Source: Podarcis pityusensis (taxonomy: Eukaryota). From it: 64,000 nt of DNA. The notes beneath the pieces were generated by a model that saw only the letters and a list, made by a program, of their open reading frames with translations, was not told the origin of the DNA and did not search any database. The position numbers and the translations under genes are program-made. Of this stretch, positions 17,148 through 44,829 are shown piece by piece (the stretch's first letter is position 1; every line of letters starts with the position of its first letter). The stretch lies in assembly GCA_964106645.2 (NCBI GenBank), contig OZ067044.1; one strand, written 5' to 3'.

Positions 17148-17310
17148 AGGCCAGCTGAAGAGCACATTTGTATGCCGCATGCAAAAGTTGCCGCTTCAGT
17201 CCTTGGCATTTCTAGTTAAAACTGTGCCTGAGTCCTAATCCAAGTAGACAGTAGTGAGCTAGGTAGATAAATAATCTGTCTGGCCTGGTATTAAACAGCT
17301 TCATATGTTA
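17148..17310 (+). mobile_element. Decayed tRNA-derived SINE
   Basis: 3' part GTAGACAGTAGTGAGCTAG...CAGCTTCATATGTT is the reverse complement of the copies at 25882 and 51813. Confidence 0.55.
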
Positions 17311-17439
17311 CATGCCAGAAAGGTAGCTCTTCACCTGATTATTGTAAAGTTGCCAGGGTTTTGTTTTTTTTAGTAGCCAGGCTGATGGAAATGCCTTGCT
17401 AACCATATGTGTTGATGCAGTTTTTTGCTTACCCTGCAG

Positions 17440-17668
17440 GGACCCATCAATTCCCAGATGCTAGCCCAGAGGCAGAGGGAGATACTGAGCCAGCACCTGA
17501 GGCATAGGCAGATGCAGCAGCAAGTGCAGCAGCGAACGCTGATGATGCGAGGACAGAGTATGAATATGACGCCGAGTATGGTGGCCTCTGGTGGCATACC
17601 AGCAACAATGAGCAACCCGCGGATTCCCCAGGCAAATGCCCAGCAATTTCCATTTCCTCCAAACTATG
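17440..17668 (+). CDS. NCOA2: NCOA2 coding exon ([16 protein letters not shown]...FPFPPNY); possible alternative donor at 17935
   Basis: ctgcAG acceptor. Proximal donor G|gtattg gives the canonical PPNYG-I junction. Confidence 0.92.
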
Positions 17669-18172
17669 GTATTGCACTTATTTCAACACCTTTCATCCAT
17701 CACAATAGTCTCAACTCCTGGATCACAGCTCCTTTCCTACAGTTCTTTATATGGCTCCCAGATGAGACACACCATCTGGAATCTGGAGATACTGGGAATT
17801 GGGTTGGGGGGGTGATGGTAGCATTTAAACTTGTTGGGATTCTCAAAATGCAAAACAGTATGTTTCTGGTTTATTACAAAACTACAAAAAAAAACCCCAT
17901 TAGTTTTGCTAAAAAGTCATATATCACAAAACAAAGTAAGCCGTGAACTTTATCCCATTTCTTTGGTACCTCAAAAAAAGATGATATTAGTCTTCAGCAG
18001 GATTTTTTTCACTGTAGTTTATGGTAGCCTTGTTTTGTCCTTGTCCAAAAAAGTCCCCTCAAAATAGATTCCATGACTGCTGTACTCCTAGTGAAGGCCA
18101 TTCCAAGCCATTACATACTTCTGGCTGAATTGTTGTGTGCAGCATGAGTAAGAATCCTGTTGTGTTTTCCAG

Positions 18173-18350
18173 GAATAAATCAGCAGGCCGATCCAGGCTT
18201 CACTGGAGCTACCACTCCCCAAAGTCCGCTGATGTCCCCAAGAATGGCTCATACCCAGAGTCCCATGATCCAGCAGTCTCAGGCCAATCCTGCCTACCAA
18301 TCCTCTACGGAGATGAATGGATGGGCACAAGGGAATATGGGTGGAAACAG
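18173..18350 (+). CDS. NCOA2: NCOA2 coding exon ([24 protein letters not shown]...MGGN)
   Basis: ttccAG acceptor, AG|gtaggt donor. Confidence 0.95.
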
Positions 18351-18619
18351 GTAGGTTTGCAACTGGGCTATGACTCACAGTACGTCAGTTTTGGCCGTTG
18401 TCACATAGCTCATTCATGCATTTTTTTCAGCAATCATCCTGTTGAATCTGGGCATTCACAGAACACAGCAGTGCTGCAGACTGACACCAGAATCATTATT
18501 GGGAAAAGAGAGTGAAATATAACATGTGACTTCTATACATGAGGCCATGTCATATGAATTGTACATTCTCTTATGGAGCTATAGGGACATATCCAGCACT
18601 GCATAGTTGTAGTAGCAGT

Positions 18620-20786: not shown

Positions 20787-21185
20787 GTACTGGGAGCCAA
20801 TGTAGGTCTTTCAGGACCGGTGTTATGTGGTGTCAGCGGCCACTCCCAGTCACCAGTCTAGCTGCCGCATTCTGGATTAGTTGTAGTTTCCGGGTCACCT
20901 TCAAAGGTAGCCCCACATAGAGCGCATTGCAGTAGTCCAAGCGGAAGATAACCAGAGCGTGCACCACTCTGGTGAGACAGTCCACGGACAGGTAGGGTCT
21001 TAGCCTGCGTACCAGGTGGAGCTGGTAGACAGCTGCCCTGGAGACAGAATTGATCTGTGCCTCCATGGACAGCTGTGAGTCCAAAATGACTCCCAGGCTG
21101 CGCACCTGGTCTTTCAGAGGCACAGTTACCCCATTCAGGACCAGGGAGTCCTCCACACCTGCCCGCCCCTTGTCCCCCAAGTACA
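20787..21185 (-). mobile_element. Internal L2 LINE ORF2 fragment (post-RT region)
   Basis: ORF 20833-21186(-): LGVILDSQLSMEAQI...LVHALVIFRLDYCNALYVGLP...LQLIQNAAARLVTG. Confidence 0.92.
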
Positions 21186-21237
21186 TGCTCAGTTAAGCAT
21201 TGCTATTAATGCTTCTTTTTCCTTTTTGGTCTTCTAG

Positions 21238-24295: not shown

Positions 24296-24443
24296 NNNNN
24301 NNNNNNNNNNNNNNNNNNNNNNNNNNNNNNNNNNNNNNNNNNNNNNNNNNNNNNNNNNNNNNNNNNNNNNNNNNNNNNNNNNNNNNNNNNNNNNNNNNNN
24401 NNNNNNNNNNNNNNNNNNNNNNNNNNNNNNNNNNNNNNNNNNN
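24296..24443. other. Assembly gap (148 N)
   Basis: Run of N. Confidence 0.99.
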
Positions 24444-24681: not shown

Positions 24682-24938
24682 NNNNNNNNNNNNNNNNNNN
24701 NNNNNNNNNNNNNNNNNNNNNNNNNNNNNNNNNNNNNNNNNNNNNNNNNNNNNNNNNNNNNNNNNNNNNNNNNNNNNNNNNNNNNNNNNNNNNNNNNNNN
24801 NNNNNNNNNNNNNNNNNNNNNNNNNNNNNNNNNNNNNNNNNNNNNNNNNNNNNNNNNNNNNNNNNNNNNNNNNNNNNNNNNNNNNNNNNNNNNNNNNNNN
24901 NNNNNNNNNNNNNNNNNNNNNNNNNNNNNNNNNNNNNN
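24682..24938. other. Assembly gap (257 N)
   Basis: Run of N. Confidence 0.99.
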
Positions 24939-35084: not shown

Positions 35085-35275
35085 CCCGCCACACCCCACA
35101 GATGAAGACCCTCCGGGAGAGTCCTCGGTGGGTGGGAACTTATGAAAGGGTCTCGGGACAATAGGGCGGAGAGCGTTTCCCTGACGGGGAAGTGATCCGG
35201 TGGCCTTATATAAGCCTCCGGGGACGGAAAGTGACAGTAGCTGAGGTAACCTCAGCTCCACTGCGCCTGAGGAAA
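35085..35275 (+). promoter_or_regulatory. PRDM14: PRDM14 proximal promoter
   Basis: CCACACCC 35089-35096, GGGCGG 35164-35169, TGACG 35182, GGAAGTG 35188-35194 and TATATAA 35207-35213, all within a CpG island just upstream of the first ATGs. Confidence 0.65.
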
Positions 35276-35313
35276 AGTTGCCCTTCCTCCGTTCCCTCAG
35301 CTCTCTGGCCACA

Positions 35314-35358
35314 ATGCACCCCATGACGAGTCTCCATGAGCACCTTTTCCTCCAGCAG
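35314..35358 (+). CDS. PRDM14: PRDM14 putative exon 1 coding part (MHPMTSLHEHLFLQQ); may instead be 5'UTR
   Basis: ccACAATG about 100 nt downstream of a TATA box, CAG|gtagcc donor, in frame with the next exon. Confidence 0.45.
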
Positions 35359-35430
35359 GTAGCCCCCTCCCCCTCCCTGCCCTCCCCGAGGCGCGCGCTG
35401 CCTCTCACACCTTATTATTTCTCCCCACAG

Positions 35431-36016
35431 GTTCCCGCGCTTTCCGCCGCGCCGCGCTCCTCAATGGCCTCCTCCTCCTCCTCCTTCTCCGCCGAGCCTA
35501 GCCGAGGCGAAGGCAGCAACGAGTCTTTGCTGATGCTCCTGAGGGGCTGCCAGCCCGGGCCCGGCGTCGCCTCCCCCTTCGGCCCGGTCCTGCCAGCGCC
35601 GCGCTTCCTCGAGGCGCAGCCTTCCGCCTGCCCCTTCCAGGCGCCCCTGGGAGCAGGACTGAGTCCCGGTTCGCCTCGCCTGGCGCCCTTCCCCTTCTCG
35701 CGCCTGCCCGCCGCCGCCTTCCTGCCTCCTCAGCTGCTGCCGCCGCCGCCGCCCGGTCCTCCTCTGCCCAGGCCCCAGCCGCTGCCGGTGGTCTTCCCCT
35801 CGCCCTTGGCTCGGAAGGGCGAGTCGCCTCGCCGGCGCGTCTCCGAGGGAGCGTCGCCCAAGAAGAAGAGCCCCGACGGAGCTCCGGACGCCGAGCAGCG
35901 CGCGCCCACCTACCGCTTCACCGCCCAGGAGCTGCACGCCGTCCTCTACGGGGCCGGGCCGGGAGGGAGGCAGCAGGGCGCCATGGCGGGAGCCGGGCAC
36001 CCTCCTCGCAGCCCGG
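35431..36016 (+). CDS. PRDM14: PRDM14 exon with Pro-rich N-terminus and pre-SET motif YRFTAQELHAVLYG; internal ATG at 35464
   Basis: ctccccacAG acceptor, G|gtaagg donor; the motif matches recalled PRDM14 FQFTEEDLHFVLYG. Confidence 0.88.
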
Positions 36017-37464
36017 GTAAGGAAGGCACCCGCGCGGGGTTTCCCCACAGCCTAGAGGGCGGAGGGTGGAGGGCAGGAAGAAGGCGGGCTTGGGGTGAGA
36101 GGGTGGCTGCTTCATAGGAAGAAACTTTTCGACCAGGACGACCAAGTTTGCACAAAAGCTTTTTTTGCCGGGACGTCTCACTGCCCCAACGCGAGGCTCC
36201 TTGGATAGGAACGTTTCCTCAAATAAAAGTAAAGCGTGGCGTCAAATGAAAACGGCACTTTTCCCCACCCCATTAAATCTGCTCCCAGATTTAAGATCGT
36301 TAGGAAACTTTTGCCCCCGGGATTAAATAACAGGGGCAAAAAGAACCCTTCTAATACTTTGAATTCTGGGGTTTTGGTGCACACACAGAAAGAAAAGTGG
36401 CTGGAATTTGCGGGCTGATTTTATTGGGCAGATGGCAATATCGTAGAAGGAGTCTGGTGCAGCCGTGGTCAACTTCTGTCCAAATTTTGCAAAGAAAAGT
36501 ACACCCCCCCCTTTTATATAAAAACCCCCCAATGACTGGAATAGGATGGGGGTGGGAGGAGAGAGTGAAGTAGAAGTTCACCATTAATTGCAGGCAAAAT
36601 TAAACTGGGTTTTAAGAAATCGGAGCAGTTCTGTGGAAAAACTAGATAATGGCACAGCTGGAGTCAATTTCTCTATTTTATTTTAACCCAACAGTTTATT
36701 GCTTAAACTGATGAAAACTATTGTATCTATCAGTGATTTTTAAAAAGCATTGGGTGAGGAACTGGTGTAATTATTTTACTATCTTCCATGTATTGGTTAA
36801 ATACGTTTTCAAAGCAAAAATGTTTCTGTGGAAGGAGAAACTCTGAATGCTTCTGGAGAGTCTCTCTTGACTCCCCTTTTTGTTACCTTTAATCCACCCC
36901 CAAATAAGAGAATCTAAATTTTTCTCAGAAGGGCTCCTCTTGCGAAAGAAGACCCTGATCATGCTGATCATGCTCCAACGCCTTTGCCAGATAAGAGTCA
37001 GGAAATCCTGCACTTTAACAGCAGGGCTATGGAATAAATTACCCGCTCACTCCTACTGTAACCATCCATCCCATATGCTTCAGAGAAGTGGTTAAACTGG
37101 GGACAGATTGGGGACCTTTAGATGTGTCTGTGCCCACGCGCAGTACTTTCCTAACCTTATCTTGTTGGCACTGAAGGGTGGGGTAGTTTATTTCGGATGT
37201 ATTACTCCGGTGTAACAGGGTTTAAGTTTTGTAAAGGCACGAATCCTATGCATTTCTATTCAAATTCCAATGAGGCAAATATTGATTCCAGCCTGTTTTA
37301 TTGCAGGGTCCGTAGACCCGGTGTAACTGCAATCCTCGCTCTACTTTCATGGGAATCGCCTATTTAATTCGGTGGGATTTACTTCTGAGTAGGCATGGTT
37401 GGGATTGCGCTGTTACTCCCAATTGTCTGAGTGCAGTACTAGTTCTCCTTTGCTTTCCCGTTAG

Positions 37465-37521
37465 GCGCAGTTGATGGTCAGCCGCCGCTCCTAGACAGAT
37501 CTTCTCTGCAACTCCCGGAAG
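37465..37521 (+). CDS. PRDM14: PRDM14 small exon (GAVDGQPPLLDRSSLQLPE)
   Basis: cgttAG acceptor, G|gtagct donor, phase 1-1; matches recalled LDKDSLQLPEG. Confidence 0.88.
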
Positions 37522-37676
37522 GTAGCTGCGTTTGTTTGGTTTGGCTTTTGTCAAGGGGGTGGTTGGGGAAGAGGGATCAAGGCTGAACCTTTTGAGTTCT
37601 CGTTTTCTTCAACCCAAAGACTAATCCTTCTCCCTTCTTCCTCTCTCTCCCCCCCCCTCCCGTTTCCTCTCTGTAG

Positions 37677-37834
37677 GGCTGACGGTGTTGCAGACCGTCT
37701 ACGAGGACAGTCCGCAGCTGGGAGTCTTCTGCACCGAGACCATCCCCGTCGGCGTCCGCTTCGGCCCTTTCCAGGGCAAAGTTGTCAACATCAGCGAGAT
37801 CAAGACTTACGATGACAATTCCCTGATGTGGGAG
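37677..37834 (+). CDS. PRDM14: PRDM14 PR/SET domain exon (GLTVLQTV...GVRFGPFQGKVVN...MWE)
   Basis: Long pyrimidine tract plus tAG, GAG|gtacaa donor; PR-domain FGPF motif. Confidence 0.96.
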
Positions 37835-38052
37835 GTACAATTCGCTGATGTACTGTCGCTTTCTTTTCTCCGAGGGGAGGTGGGGGGGCTGGAGGCCTCA
37901 AGCCACGCCTCTGCATAACTGATCACCGCACTTACAGTACTTGGGAAACCAGTTTCTCTGGTTCCAAGGGGTCTTACTCCCAGTAAATGCGCACGCGCTT
38001 CCAGCTTTCTAAGGGAGATAGCGCATTTCGCTCCTCAGCTGGGTGTTTTAGG

Positions 38053-38256
38053 AAGAAAGCAGTGTGGAGTAATGGTAGAGTGTTGGACTAGGGTTCAAAT
38101 TTCCGCTGAGCCATGAAACCCGTAGGTCAATCAGTCTCTCAGCCTAACCTACCTCACAGGGTTGTTCTGAAGATAAAATGGGGAGGAAGAGGGCCGTGAA
38201 TGCCGCCTTGAGCTTCCTTGTAGGGAAGGTGGAATATAAATGCAAAAAAATAAACA
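38053..38256 (+). mobile_element. MIR-like CORE-SINE in a PRDM14 intron
   Basis: tRNA-like head (GTAATGGTAGAGTG..GGGTTCAAAT), CTCAGCCTAACCTACCTCACAGGGTTGTT..GATAAAATG core, A-rich tail. Confidence 0.8.
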
Positions 38257-38647
38257 AAGGGCATATGATGCTGGACTCGCATCAACCTCAGGCTGCACGG
38301 CCAGTGGTTATGTAAGATGAGTGTTTTAGTCCCATCTGGAAGTCCAGAAGTTCCTCCACCGCTGTCTAGAGGAATAGGTGGCTTGGCTATGAAAAGATCC
38401 TGCGCGGATTGATTTAGAAGCAATCCCCATTGCTAACTCCTAACTAAGCGTGTCCATGAGGATTGCAGTTTAGCTGAACGCCAAACCCCTTGCTTTCAAC
38501 GTGAGTGGGGCGAGGGAACAGGAAGGGGCGTTTAGATTCCCACCCACCCCTCTCCTTGCCAGAAGCGGCGTTGTCTTCCTGGGTTGCTGCTCTCGCTATA
38601 AGCGGGGTGAGCAACCGTGTGTAAAGTTTGTGTGTCCATCCCAACAG

Positions 38648-38918
38648 ATTTTCGAGAACGGCCGTTTGAGCCACTTCATCGACGGCAGGGGCTCCTCCGG
38701 CAACTGGATGTCCTTAGTGAACTGCGCCCGCTTCCCCGAGGAGCAGAACTTGACGGCCCTGCAGTGCCAGGGGCAGATATTCTACGAGAGCTGCAAAGAG
38801 GTCACGCCCGGCCAGGAACTGTTGGTCTGGTACGGGGATTGCTACTTGCAGTTCTTGGGCATCCCTATCAGCCTGAAGGGAACGGCGGAAGGGAAGCCTG
38901 TCCAGGCGCACAGTGAAG
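38648..38918 (+). CDS. PRDM14: PRDM14 PR/SET domain exon ([13 protein letters not shown]...[10 protein letters not shown]...ELLVWYG)
   Basis: PR-domain motifs NWMxxVNCAR, EQNL, ELLVWYG; canonical splice sites. Confidence 0.97.
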
Positions 38919-39234
38919 GTCAGTTGGCAACCTTCCAAGGCTCCGTAAGAGTCGCGCTCAGAGCTGTTGCAGCCGGGAATCTGAATTGTCTGCTCTGTTT
39001 GCACAATGGCTCTCTCCCCCCAACCCCCAAATACCGCTTGTAAGTTCAAAATAAGTTAAATGCTTCACTTTGTAAGTCTGTTTGTCCACTTATAAAACTC
39101 CCTGTTCATTGCATTTATTCCTCGTCCCTCTTTCACTTTTTGTGCGCGCGCCTTTTAAACTTCTGAAACTAGGTGGCTGTAAAACAACCAACCACCCCTG
39201 ACGGTGGCTTTTTCCTTCCCTTTCTCACCCTCAG

Positions 39235-39437
39235 AGTCTCTGGAGGGCTATAAGTGCGAACGCTGCGGCAAGGTGTTCGCCTACAAATACTACCGCGACA
39301 AGCACCTGAAGTACACCCGGTGCGTGGACCAAGGGGACAGGAAATTCCCGTGCCAGCTTTGCAAGCGATCTTTTGAGAAAAGGGATCGGCTGAGGATCCA
39401 CGTCCTGCACGTGCACGAGAAGCACAGGCCTCACAAA
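39235..39437 (+). CDS. PRDM14: PRDM14 zinc-finger exon (ZF1-2)
   Basis: YKCERCGKVFAYKYYRDKHLKYT..C and FPCQLCKRSFEKRDRLRIHVLHVH are diagnostic of PRDM14; AAA|gtaagg donor. Confidence 0.97.
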
Positions 39438-40122
39438 GTAAGGGATCGCCAACTGGCGCCGCAGCTGGAGCAGCAGGAAATAAGTGTTTCAAAGAGTACA
39501 GAGTGCCACCCGCCCCCAACACGCTTCTCAGGAATGGAAGCAAGCCTCGGGGAATGTGGGGGAATGTGTGCGGAGGGGGGGGGGGCATTGTTGGGCAGGG
39601 ACATCTCAGGCGGTAGATTCAGGATTGCCAAAGGGAATCGTCCTCAATAGGACGATTCAATTAGCCTTGAATCGTGGGCAAGTTGAACGGTCTGTGTATC
39701 TCTCTCTGTGTGTTCTGTGACTTGCTTTTGCGTGATTGTGGTTTCATCCAACGGGCACTTTACTATCCTGTTTTTAATTTTAAAAAGGTCTTTTGGTCGT
39801 TTTCATAAAGGGCTCCGTGCGTGTAGCCTTACTTGGGAGTAAGTCCCATGGAAAGCAATGGAATTTGACTTCCGAGTAAGCATTGCTTTGTATGGCATCG
39901 GGCTTAAATACGGTGTGTCACAAAGGATGCCCTTGAAAGTCTCTGCAGCTGTTACGTGTTGCATTTCTGTGTGTGAATGCGGAGGAGTCTAATGGACTGT
40001 GATAGGTTGTTCTCCGTTGGCACTTGCCGATTTCGTTTAAGCTCCGCATAAGTAGGCTGAGGCAGAGACTCAATGCAGTAGTTATCTATTAAGAGTACGT
40101 TTTCTTTGCGGTCTAGTTAAAA

Positions 40123-40398
40123 CAGTGGTTCTCAAAGGGTGTGGCAGGAGACGGTGGCGGGAGGATTCAAATACAATCAATATTATGTGTTATTATGTGG
40201 CTGCATTTTTTCCCCTGGGTGTCCCATGATCATATTATAAAGCAGCTGTGTTCTGAGTTACAAGTCACGCACTGCTAGGAGTTGCTTCTTTTTCTTTTCC
40301 AATGTATTTCTTACCGATTAAAAAAAAAAAATCGGTGTGGCGCCTGCAAATTTTACTTCTGAAAGCGTGGCCCAAATAAAACAGTCTGAGAACCACTG
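40123..40398. mobile_element. hAT-Charlie-type MITE
   Basis: Perfect 12-bp TIRs CAGTGGTTCTCA/TGAGAACCACTG; partial TSD AGTTAAAA/AGTTAGGG. Confidence 0.8.
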
Positions 40399-41412
40399 AG
40401 TTAGGGGGTGAAGGAAAACCATGGTGACACTTCCGGGAAGGGGTCCTGATTGTGCCCCCTCCCCCCTCTCGGGAAAAAACAACGCAGAGAGTTCAAGTTA
40501 CTCTCCTGCTTCACTGCAGGGAGTGATTGCAGCTCCAGGAAACCACCATTGCAAAACGCACCGCCTCTGCTGATTCTCTGCCCTGAAATCTTTTTTTCCT
40601 CTTGTTTTGTTGCTGCCCCCCCCCCTTTTCTTCCTTTTTTAAAACTATGATTACTTGCGGTTTATTGGAGCAAATGTTCGGCCTCAACCCTGGAGCGCAC
40701 TTGTCTGAAAGCAGACCCAGTTCATTCAAAGCCAATGAGGTTTGCTTGTGACGGTAGTGATCTTCACACAAAACCCCTAGCAATGAAATCGGGTGGAGCG
40801 AATTCCTGAGTTCCTCAAGGTAATGGTTCTGGATAGTTCATCTGTTGTGAAATTTAGAAGCGTGGTGTTGCATTTAGTTGCAATTGCACTACACTTTTGG
40901 AAACAGAATTACAAAATGGAAAGGTTATGGAACTTTTAAATATAGATAAGTGTGCTTTCTGTCTCTCCTCTCCCCTCCTATACCCAAGGATTCCACGGCA
41001 CTGAAATGTCTTTTAGCCTCTCCAGTATCTTCGGTTGGCTGGAATAATTAAAGATGAACTAGGCAAAGGGGAATTCCCATAAGTGCCATATTTTAAAGAG
41101 CAGCTCCTTATTTGAATTGTGTTAGAGCTCCTGGCAGGGAGAGGGGAAAGAACTCTCATTTCATAGTGAGAAACTGATCTCACCCACTTTTACTTAGAAG
41201 TAACTGACAGCCCAGCCTTTATGTATCTATAGAACTACAGCCTGAGGCTGCAATCCTATACTTACCTAGGCGTATGTCTGATTAAATTAACTGGGGCTTA
41301 CTTCTAAGTAGATAGTCTTGGGAATGTGCTCTGAAAAGGTGTCACTTGACTTGATTGCTATTCCAGACAATAGCTGAGTACTATCTTCCATTTAATAATA
41401 TACATTCACATC

Positions 41413-41851
41413 TTTTTTTTTTTTTTTAAAGCAATTTATTAGGTTTTACAATAAAAATAAACATAATAAGCAATATAACATTGATCTTAACATATTTTCA
41501 CATTTTCTTTGGACTTCCTCACATCTCCCGCTCCCACTTTCATCGTTGTAACGTTTTGTCAGCAATTTATCATCTTATTTAGATTCTTATATCCCTTCTA
41601 TATTTCATAATCTTATAATTCTCAGAAAGGAGCTAAATTTCACAATCTTACTTATTTTCTTAAAAATTTCTAAATTTAGTGGTGCTCAGTTATTTTGATC
41701 TAGCATCTTATTTAGCATTCACTCAAATTACAATACTTTTGTAAATAATTCTTAAATTTCTTCCAGTCCTCCTCAATCCTCTCTTCTCCCAGGTCACGGA
41801 TTCTGCCGGTCATTTCAGCCAGTTCCATGTAGTCTATCAGTTGTATCTGCC
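41413..41851 (-). mobile_element. Young 5'-truncated L1-clade LINE with poly(A) tail and 13-bp TSD
   Basis: Poly-T from 41413; TSD ATACATTCACATC at 41400-41412 and 41852-41864; minus-strand peptide WQIQLIDYMELAEMTGRIRDLGEERIEEDWKKFK. Confidence 0.88.
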
Positions 41852-41864
41852 ATACATTCACATC

Positions 41865-42372
41865 ATTATTATCCACTTTACCACCCTGGCTCTTTAGAGG
41901 CTATCAACTTCCTTACCTCCCACCTCATGGCTTTCAAAATTAACCTTTATATCATTACATTTCGTATGTTTCCCACTTCTAATCACACTCATTACAAAAT
42001 AGCTCAAAATGTAAATAAATAAACTTCTCATTACAAGTCTTCAGATAACCCTGCTAGTGATGTTAATTGCCTACAATAATCTTTCAGATATTGAATAAAT
42101 TCACTCCAGTCCTTTTGGAATACTTGATGGTGCTTGTTTCGGATTTTTCCTGTCAGCTTCACCAATTCTGCAAAGTCCATCATCTTCATCTGCCACTCTT
42201 CTTTCATTGGTACTTCTTGTTGTTTCCATTTTTGAGCTAAAAGAATTTTTGCCACAGTTGTTGCATACATACAGTTTTTTTATCTTCCCTTCGTATCTCT
42301 TCACCCACTATATCCAATAAAAAAGCTTCTGGTTTTTTAAACAAAAGTATTTTTAAATACTTTCTTTAACTT
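41865..42372 (-). mobile_element. Older L1-clade LINE 3' fragment, host of the 41413 insertion
   Basis: ORF 42031-42270(-): YATTVAKILLAQKWK..EEWQMKMMDFAELVKLTGKIR..DWSEFIQYL, homologous to the nested copy. Confidence 0.82.
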
Positions 42373-42883
42373 CAGTCCAACAGACTTAGGACAGCTTTAC
42401 AACATTTTAGTTTTTTTCTTGATTTGTGCCACTCTGCCGTAAAACCTGCAGAGAACACCCCAGATGTAGAACCTCTCTCGGGTGCTTTGTTCTCCACACA
42501 GGGTGACAGGAATGGGGAGGAGGGAGGAGCTAGCACATTAACTTAGCATCCAACCATGACTTCTGAACTGAGGGCTGTTCACTAACAACCTCTCACGAAC
42601 TAGCATTACACTTTCTTCAAGCCCAGCTGGCCATATAAACACAACTTCAACTCAGTTGTCTCATTCCCTATCCTTGAAATCTGATTAAGCGGGAGGAAAA
42701 AGTGAGACATCTTCCTTCATTTTCATCCCTTGTTACAGGGACAGAAAGAGCCTCAGCTTGGTAGCAATTAAGTAGAAGCAATTAAGAAGTCTCAGGCAAT
42801 AAACAATGTTAAAATAGTTTTGTAAAATAGTTACAAACTACAAGTGCACCTCCCCTTACATGCATCCCACTCGGAGACCTCAT

Positions 42884-42931
<48 letters not shown>
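42884..42931. repeat. (GATA)12 microsatellite
   Basis: Direct reading. Confidence 0.97.
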
Positions 42932-43707
42932 TCTTCTCCTTGTTTGGGGCTGCTGCCCAGAAGTTGCTGCCTCAGGGAGGGAAGGTGGCCTTTGATTGAC
43001 TAGCGGCTTCTCCTCACCTCCATTGCATGTCCATGAACCCATCCTGGTACCAGTTACGTTGGGCGCCCTTCTCTGCCCCTGCCCTCTGTGGCCAGCCAGC
43101 CACTGCTGCTGCACCCACTGGCCCCCCTCAGGTAGGCAGGCTCAGTTCAGGCTAGGCAGCTGCCCCAGATAATGAGTCTCTCCCTCCCTCCCCTCCCTCC
43201 CTGCATGCCCTCCTTATTAAAGTTAGCTGCTTTCCACTTTACACAATTTCACTTATGCCCTCGAGGGCCCAGAACACCTGTATATATGTGTGTGTGTGTA
43301 ATCAGCCTCTGTTTTAACATATCAATGCTTGGAAAATGCGCGAAGCTATATAGTAGACACTGATACTCCAGTACTGGACAAGACTACAGGCTTATGCCAG
43401 AGTGTTTTGTGGGGGACAGGGGGAATCAGACTCTCAGGCCTTGTTATCACTGTGCACCCAAGTGCCCACAAATCGATCAGAGCATCTTTACAGGGCAATC
43501 TGCAAATCAGTGTGTAGGCTTCAAGCCTACACAGCGAAGGCACGTAGTACAGGCAGGGGCTGTGGCTAAAATAATCTTCTTGGCATGATTCATACATATA
43601 GGTTGAAACCTTGTATATTTCTACATTCTACATACATTATTTTTTATATAAAAAAGCACATTATCAGTTATGTTTGCCTTGTCTGTCTTGTCTGTATTCC
43701 TATCTAA

Positions 43708-43959
<252 letters not shown>

Positions 43960-44829
43960 TAGTTGCTTGTAGGACTTTATGTTCTCTGGCATGCTCAGTT
44001 TAATCTGTTTTAATTCTGAATTTAACGCTGAGCCCCAACTATGTTAGATGTAATGCAGAAGACACACGGCAGGTCTCCCAACATATGCATTTGTTATTAC
44101 TGCATCTGGGAAGGCATGGAAATACAATGTTTTCTATTTGCAATGAACTGGAGTCTCAGCCTCCTTAGGTGAATGTAAGGCTATCTGAGCCAAGCTTTTA
44201 TTCCTGGGTCCCACACCTGAACAGACTGTTATAAAACAGTGGTGTAGTTGATGGAATTTTAGGCTCTGGATTTAACCTTCTTGCAACCCTCTTCCACTTA
44301 GATGATAAATAAAGTGGCAAGGCAGCCCTGCTAGGTTCCTCCCCACTGGCAGCGGGGGGTGGGGTGGGTGTTTGCTGAGTGGGACCTTGGATTTCTTCCT
44401 CAAAGTCCTCCCTTAACAGCATCACAGACTGCAAAACAAAATATCACCTTTTGATAGTTGCCGTGACTGACTTGTAAGTTGATTTGTCACATGTGTTGCC
44501 TGCCGGCCCTTTAGGGGAGCTTGTGGAAATGTATATGGAGCGAGTCCCCTTTTTATTTCCACTACAATCTTGTGAACTAGGCTTGTCTGAGAGATAATGA
44601 TGACTTGCTCAAGGCTATTTACAGAATGCCATAGCTTGGCTGTGATTTGCACATAGTTTCCCACATCCCTCCTTCACTGGCTGTGAACATGTGAGGCTGG
44701 GATTTATAAGACCCAGCAAAAGCCCAATTGGTTCTCCTGCTGTAGAAACAAGCATTGTAACTTAATTACAATTTTGTGAGCATGTAATTCCTTTCATCTT
44801 GTTTGTCACTTGTAGCTTTGTGTCTGAAT

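Follow-up and report, generated by a model that had tools for sequence, protein, structure and literature searches.

The DNA that follows the canonical donor of a 3' coding exon of NCOA2 in Podarcis pityusensis is very probably a pseudoexonized alternative exon segment, with the reading frame that stays open through it to a donor-like motif at position 17935 as a by-product (the window is the whole 64,000-nt stretch of DNA analyzed, and all positions refer to it). This stretch is homologous to a coding segment that remains intact in outgroups, the splice site that includes the segment has been lost, and frame-breaking lesions are accompanied by relaxed protein constraint; the in-phase distal donor at +207 and the intact ancestral frame of a functional long isoform are both missing from the window. 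A sequence-only reading of the same DNA had offered two outcomes, a lineage-specific coactivator isoform or a decaying exon. The dead donor, the frameshifts, and a pN/pS ratio of ~1 speak for the second, and the first is opposed by close relatives, in which the frame to 17935 is broken and no junction from that position was found among probable RNA contigs. The window provides a clear case of an alternative exon segment becoming intron, and no new coactivator isoform follows from the finding.

As annotated isoforms show, the NCOA2 exon of the vertebrate ancestor carried two donors 207 nt apart, so that the protein either included or lacked an insert of 69 residues, rich in Ser, Pro, and Gly, that divides a DUF1518 repeat midway. 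In the lineage of the window, the distal donor was destroyed, and the segment gained indels and amino-acid-changing substitutions; splicing at the proximal donor yields the short protein, as is evident in one relative and is likely for this species. The open frame would then reflect two frameshifts that cancel and bring the 3' block back into its old stop-free frame, together with a slippery A/C run whose current length places a nearby cryptic donor in phase, which to judge from the relatives is probably a passing accident. Any rare use of the donor at 17935 in those relatives would be expected to lead to removal of the transcript by nonsense-mediated decay, an established pathway. The coordinates of the features concerned are collected in Table 1, in which, as in the text, a slash within a motif marks the donor boundary.

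Table 1. Features of the NCOA2 exon, the relic segment, and the downstream donor-like motifs in the window
Feature	Positions	Strand	Remarks
Canonical NCOA2 coding exon	17440..17668	+	Gln-rich region and first half of DUF1518 repeat; ends at weak proximal donor ATG/gtattg
Relic of ancestral 207-nt (69-codon) alternative 5' splice-site extension	17669..17881	+	Now 213 nt, intronic
Deletion zone, net -11 nt	17680..17716	+	Shifts ancestral text into +1 frame; breakpoints approximate; relatives without indel in this zone
Best-kept block, 16 ancestral codons in +1 frame	17717..17764	+	14/16 identical to marsupial isoform
Insertion of ~15 nt, frame-neutral	17765..17779	+	Ancestral N-L..G text resumes in +1 afterwards; placement inferred from alignment
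G-rich tract with net +2 nt	17801..17823	+	Returns 3' block to frame 0; further +2 here in relative B
Second phase-1 donor-like motif, ACA/gtatgt at 17857	17855..17863	+	Not in frame in relative B or in one allele of G; no junction in contigs
Destroyed ancestral distal donor	17879..17887	+	CAG/GTACCA (L003, L006) maps to AAA/CTACAA; GT gone at 17881/17882
A9-C4 homopolymer run	17886..17898	+	Length varies among close relatives; sets frame of 17935 motif
Donor-like motif AAA/gtaagc at 17935	17933..17941	+	In frame in window but not in B, F, or either allele of G; B without its +5 G; no junction in contigs
TGA terminating read-through frame	17944..17946	+	
Next NCOA2 exon	18173..18350	+	Second half of DUF1518 repeat

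The ancestral insert in other vertebrates

The 3' coding exons of NCOA2 were placed on the + strand of the window by tblastn with a marsupial protein and were compared one by one, by reference; protein comparisons left out P0144 (human), P0018 (possibly human), P0020, and P0139, and the taxon labels given to genomic loci (L001, L002, L003, and L005-L009) were inferred from exon sequence. The intron between the canonical exon and the next measures 504 nt and contains no intronic polyadenylation signal of the form A(A/T)TAAA. An AATAAA is present at 18174-18179, where the next coding exon begins, and is probably just Gly-Ile-Asn codons.

The sequence-only reading had pointed to a longer alternative form of this NCOA2 exon in other vertebrates, and it was right: a 69-codon insert is annotated in NCOA2 of chimaera, sharks, frogs, marsupials, and placentals, with 70 or more codons in ray-finned fish (annotated in bichir and gar), and the start of the intron in the window is homologous to it. 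Short NCOA2 forms that lack the insert are annotated too; because the insert is annotated in the long forms and absent from the short ones, it is an alternative 5' splice-site extension. It splits the DUF1518 repeat, the halves of which sit in the two flanking exons, and in both intact DNA loci that were fetched, the frog-like L003 and the placental-like L006, the distal donor reads CAG/GTACCA at +207. Between the chimaera Callorhinchus and the marsupial, 64 of the 69 residues of the insert are identical (93%), compared with only 17 of 25 at the end of the adjacent constitutive exon. The long (+69 aa) NCOA2/TIF2/GRIP1 isoforms in RefSeq and UniRef (for example, those of Antechinus, X1 of 1533 aa, Callorhinchus, Lepisosteus, and Mantella) share with the window the same exon, the same proximal donor, and the same position of the insert in DUF1518; however, they are database predictions with an intact insert, whereas the window has lost the distal donor and holds the segment in frameshifted, intronic form. 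Among the papers searched, there was no study describing the 69-aa NCOA2 insert; skipping of exon 12-13 is a different NCOA2 event (PMC4307332).

A further claim, that NCOA1 also continues coding past PPNYG, is borne out by the NCOA1 proteins of peafowl and Xenopus, which carry a homologous segment at the same place, so that the segment probably predates the split of NCOA1 and NCOA2. No homologous segment was present in the duck and frog NCOA3 proteins examined. In birds, the two paralogs appear to have gone separate ways, with the segment kept in NCOA1 (SRC-1) but lost in bird-like NCOA2 loci. By score, the end of the ancestral insert resembles the first half of a DUF1518 repeat, as does the end of the canonical exon (marsupial long isoform P0107, approximately residues 1320-1376; window, 17594-17668 and 17824-17881), and each of the two donors may follow a copy of an old internal duplication.

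Decay of the segment in the window

At the DNA level, positions 17669-17875 align with the placental-like locus with a local score of 82, compared with a shuffle maximum of 38. The earlier suggestion that the +1 frame at 17717-17764 holds ancestral coding text is strongly supported: 14 of 16 residues match the marsupial long isoform, the local scores of 63-74 lie above shuffle maxima of 39-47, and none of 500 shuffles reaches them. The ancestral frame continues in +1 until ~17800. Compensating frameshifts, which had also been proposed, are evident in the alignments, although their breakpoints are approximate: net changes of -11, +15, and +2 sum to +6 at the site of the ancestral donor. Restoration of the frame by any set of indels has one chance in three.

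Beyond the last of these lesions, the 3' block is recognizably homologous as DNA at 17822 (32 of 66 ungapped matches; P = 0.004-0.011 in an ungapped scan), and only 5 of 19 amino acids are identical to those of the marsupial. Its pN/pS ratio is ~1, a value somewhat inflated by reference-side changes, compared with 0.12-0.14 for the canonical exon. The likeness of frame 0 to ancestral text on either side of the shifted middle (GIALISTPF before it and GNWVGG..KMQNSMF after it), on which the sequence-only reading had relied, was not significant when scored as protein matches (P = 0.34-0.74); because the ancestral frame runs in +1 to ~17800, the GNWVGG likeness is probably a coincidence.

The hydrophobic peptide that was said to have been created by frameshifting of the middle segment fared better in one part than in the other. 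The shift of frame is real, but the peptide is not specially new: translated in that frame, L003 and L006 give WVT....LFAWL.DES, and this text recurs in mammal loci that are frameshifted. As judged from these loci, the peptide is an ordinary out-of-frame reading of ancestral Ser/Pro codons, found in frog and mammal loci as well, and it needs no special cause, since the same-frame reading of the two intact loci gives like text. A reading of the peptide as a membrane helix was rejected, the best 19-residue hydropathy being 1.35, below the usual threshold. No carrier of the frame-0 read-through peptide was found in a protein word search or among 1.84 billion representatives, and a metagenome scan with a donor-spanning pattern gave 0 matches. 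No stable RNA fold was predicted for the relic or its intact homologues (z scores of -0.3 to +1.4).

An AG is present at 17707-17708 after a pyrimidine-rich stretch, and removal of a 40-nt intron at 17669-17708 would place the +1 block in frame until a stop at 17814. Such a mini-intron was discounted, as it is below the normal size of vertebrate introns and no such joint was seen in the contigs.

The open frame and the motif at 17935

As had been reported, frame 0 is open past 17668 and through 17935, the first stop being the TGA immediately beyond the donor-like motif. That motif lies 267 nt past the canonical donor, in phase 1, and scores 4.0, compared with -1.1 for the canonical donor, the weakness of which is thereby confirmed; both scores derive from a rough consensus matrix typed in from textbook frequencies. 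A second phase-1 donor motif, at 17857 and 189 nt past the canonical donor, had been overlooked. The motif at 17935 is situated 54 nt past the dead donor site (17881) and is not the ancestral donor.

Sequence contigs of relatives from four runs were compared over 17300-18500. Four relatives have no indel with respect to the window wherever they cover 17669-17800, and the old indels are confirmed rather than being assembly errors. The homopolymer runs in the region could be taken to suggest that the indels arose in assembly and that the ancestral extension is in truth intact, but the old indels and the dead donor are common to relatives, and the run of organism E (possibly the source data) contains all sampled words; we regard such an error as exceedingly improbable.

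Farther downstream, the relatives diverge from the window and from each other. In relative B, there is +2 at 17805, the read-through frame stops at codon 50, and the 17935 motif has lost its +5 G; relative F has -1 at 17895; and relative G has two alleles, with -1 and -5. The distance from the canonical donor to the 17935 motif is consequently 269, 266, 266, and 262 nt in the four fully read haplotypes (B, F, and the two of G), none a multiple of three, with frame offsets of +2, -1, -1, and -5 in these three close relatives; all five indels of relatives within the 267-nt stretch are likewise not multiples of three. Thus, the frame has been restored by indels in the window but is not kept in close relatives, including species ~99% identical. 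Relative A has no indel in the part covered (17687-17896). Relative G is heterozygous at 17824-17991, where 9 substitutions and 4 small deletions separate its two alleles and the window, and the area appears to be a local indel hotspot.

Contigs of two relatives that are probably derived from RNA bear on the junctions, for which the sequence-only reading had proposed a count of reads; they are Logan contigs, from which rare forms are dropped, their RNA label is a guess by the tool, and they represent two relatives' species only. In X2, from relative B, the sole joint runs from 17668 to 18173, at a depth of 87, and the sole other contig, with a depth of 5.8, spans the whole intron unbranched, through 17857 and 17935, which is what unspliced or retained intron (or DNA) would give. 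In X1, from relative A, an intron contig is unbranched past 17857 and ends at 17896. Junctions from 17935 or 17857 were absent from the X1 and X2 contigs, the intact 17935 motif lying outside their coverage and the motif of relative B being a weakened one. The canonical junction has therefore been seen in one relative's probable RNA, and the extended one has not.

These data bear directly on the reading that compensating frameshifts have created a translated 89-residue insert, spliced from 17935 and specific to this species or to a small clade. In its favor, the frame is open for 89 codons, for which base composition alone gives an expectation of ~0.4%, the motif is in phase and stronger than the canonical donor, and relative A shows no indel over the part that it covers. 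However, the figure of ~0.4% takes no account of the old ORF that, in part of the stretch, has returned to its own frame, the peptide equals what the ancestral codons of frog and mammal give when read out of frame, the relatives' contigs contain no junction from 17935, and every fully read haplotype of a close relative is out of frame. We consider such an isoform very unlikely.

The origin of the motif itself invites another explanation. In the placental-like locus L006 (position ~1310, at +257 from the proximal donor), a strong donor motif, GAA/GTAAGT, follows the distal donor by 50 nt and is out of frame; several mammal-like ORFs read ..EVSV there, so that placentals may have conserved it as a poison or decoy. 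The motif at 17935 could descend from such an out-of-frame donor and serve as a poison or decoy itself, its use sending a share of transcripts to nonsense-mediated decay and its in-frame length in the window being incidental; the spacing from the distal donor is similar (50 and 54 nt), and B, F, and one G allele fall in the same frame class as the L006 motif. Against this descent, the similarity of the surrounding DNA is not significant (score of 14, compared with a shuffle mean of 16), the motif is absent from frog and bird-like loci and broken in L005, the +5 G is lost in relative B, and the contigs show no junction; we hold it to be very unlikely.

Possible residual constraint and repeated loss

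The pseudoexon explanation leaves room for constraint on the 5' part of the relic. Among relatives, only 1 change event falls in the 132 nt of 17669-17800, compared with 19 in 17801-17935 and 14 in 17936-18172 (P = 0.0004-0.018, depending on the control, post hoc); in terms of changes, the first 132 nt show 1 and the distal 237 nt show 13 (P = 0.018). The block at 17717-17764 differs from the intact loci at 7 of 48 nt and the 3' block at 20 of 45 (P = 0.003), and 5 of the 7 changes in the former are synonymous when read in the ancestral frame (P = 0.045; likewise post hoc). Since this block is better kept and the first 132 nt change slowly, part of the relic may still be constrained. In the intact insert, synonymous sites are unusually conserved between frog and mammal (pS of 0.18, compared with 0.61 in the exon), which, as a property of sequence, points to an older RNA-level constraint. 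The simplest reading, which we offer tentatively, is that a splicing signal near the weak donor outlived its coding role or that the 5' part had a longer-lasting coding role in an ancestor.

A more specific form of this idea, that the first ~130 nt no longer code but have survived, or been co-opted, in a noncoding capacity, most likely as an intronic splicing enhancer for the weak proximal donor or for the tuning of how far this short intron is retained, is possible but doubtful. The scarcity of changes among relatives, the low pS of the intact extension, and the weakness of the proximal donor are in keeping with it, and it is compatible with the pseudoexon explanation; however, the boundary was drawn post hoc from four related species only, the middle segment with which it is contrasted is a homopolymer-rich hotspot, no stable fold is predicted (z scores of +0.5 to +1.0), and this block shows heavy erosion in L001, the other squamate-like locus. 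A combination in which the first ~130 nt are kept as the clade's splicing-control element and a minor in-frame transcript is spliced from 17935 in this species alone is a long shot; if true, a new hydrophobic insert would have been caught at birth beside a co-opted splicing-control element.

Loss of the segment is not peculiar to the window. A word search with the read-through ORF returned vertebrate genomic ORFs, some with an intact 69-codon segment and many with broken versions; the best 120 full-length matches included no NCOA2 named as that of a lizard, snake, turtle, crocodilian, or bird. The bird-like loci L002, L007, L008, and L009, the mammal-like L005, and the squamate-like L001 are all disrupted, each in a different way, by indels, stops, or changes to the donor. 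L001 has the gtattg donor and exon residues of the window, but its central block stays in frame 0 and contains two stops; these are Gln-to-stop changes (L001:1098-1250), a route of decay unlike that of the window. Several amniote loci have thus lost, through different lesions, an insert with 93% identity between chimaera and marsupial, whereas bird NCOA1 has kept its copy, and these loci form a natural series of losses for asking what the 69-residue insert does.

Repeated pseudoexonization has been described for TNNI3 exon 3 in shrews and moles (bioRxiv 10.1101/2023.05.19.541292), and the likeness is that of a conserved coding segment, alternatively spliced in some lineages and lost several times elsewhere. 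TNNI3 exon 3, however, is a cassette exon for which phosphosites and a physiological link are known, whereas the NCOA2 segment extends an exon through an alternative donor, and no trait has been tied to its loss.

Elsewhere in the window, N runs occupy 24296-24443 and 24682-24938. An ORF fragment on the - strand at 20836-21192, just past the last NCOA2 coding exon, resembles what we take to be the C-terminal part of an L2-type LINE reverse transcriptase. Farther downstream, at ~35200-44000, PR/SET-like and zinc-finger exons are found on the + strand.
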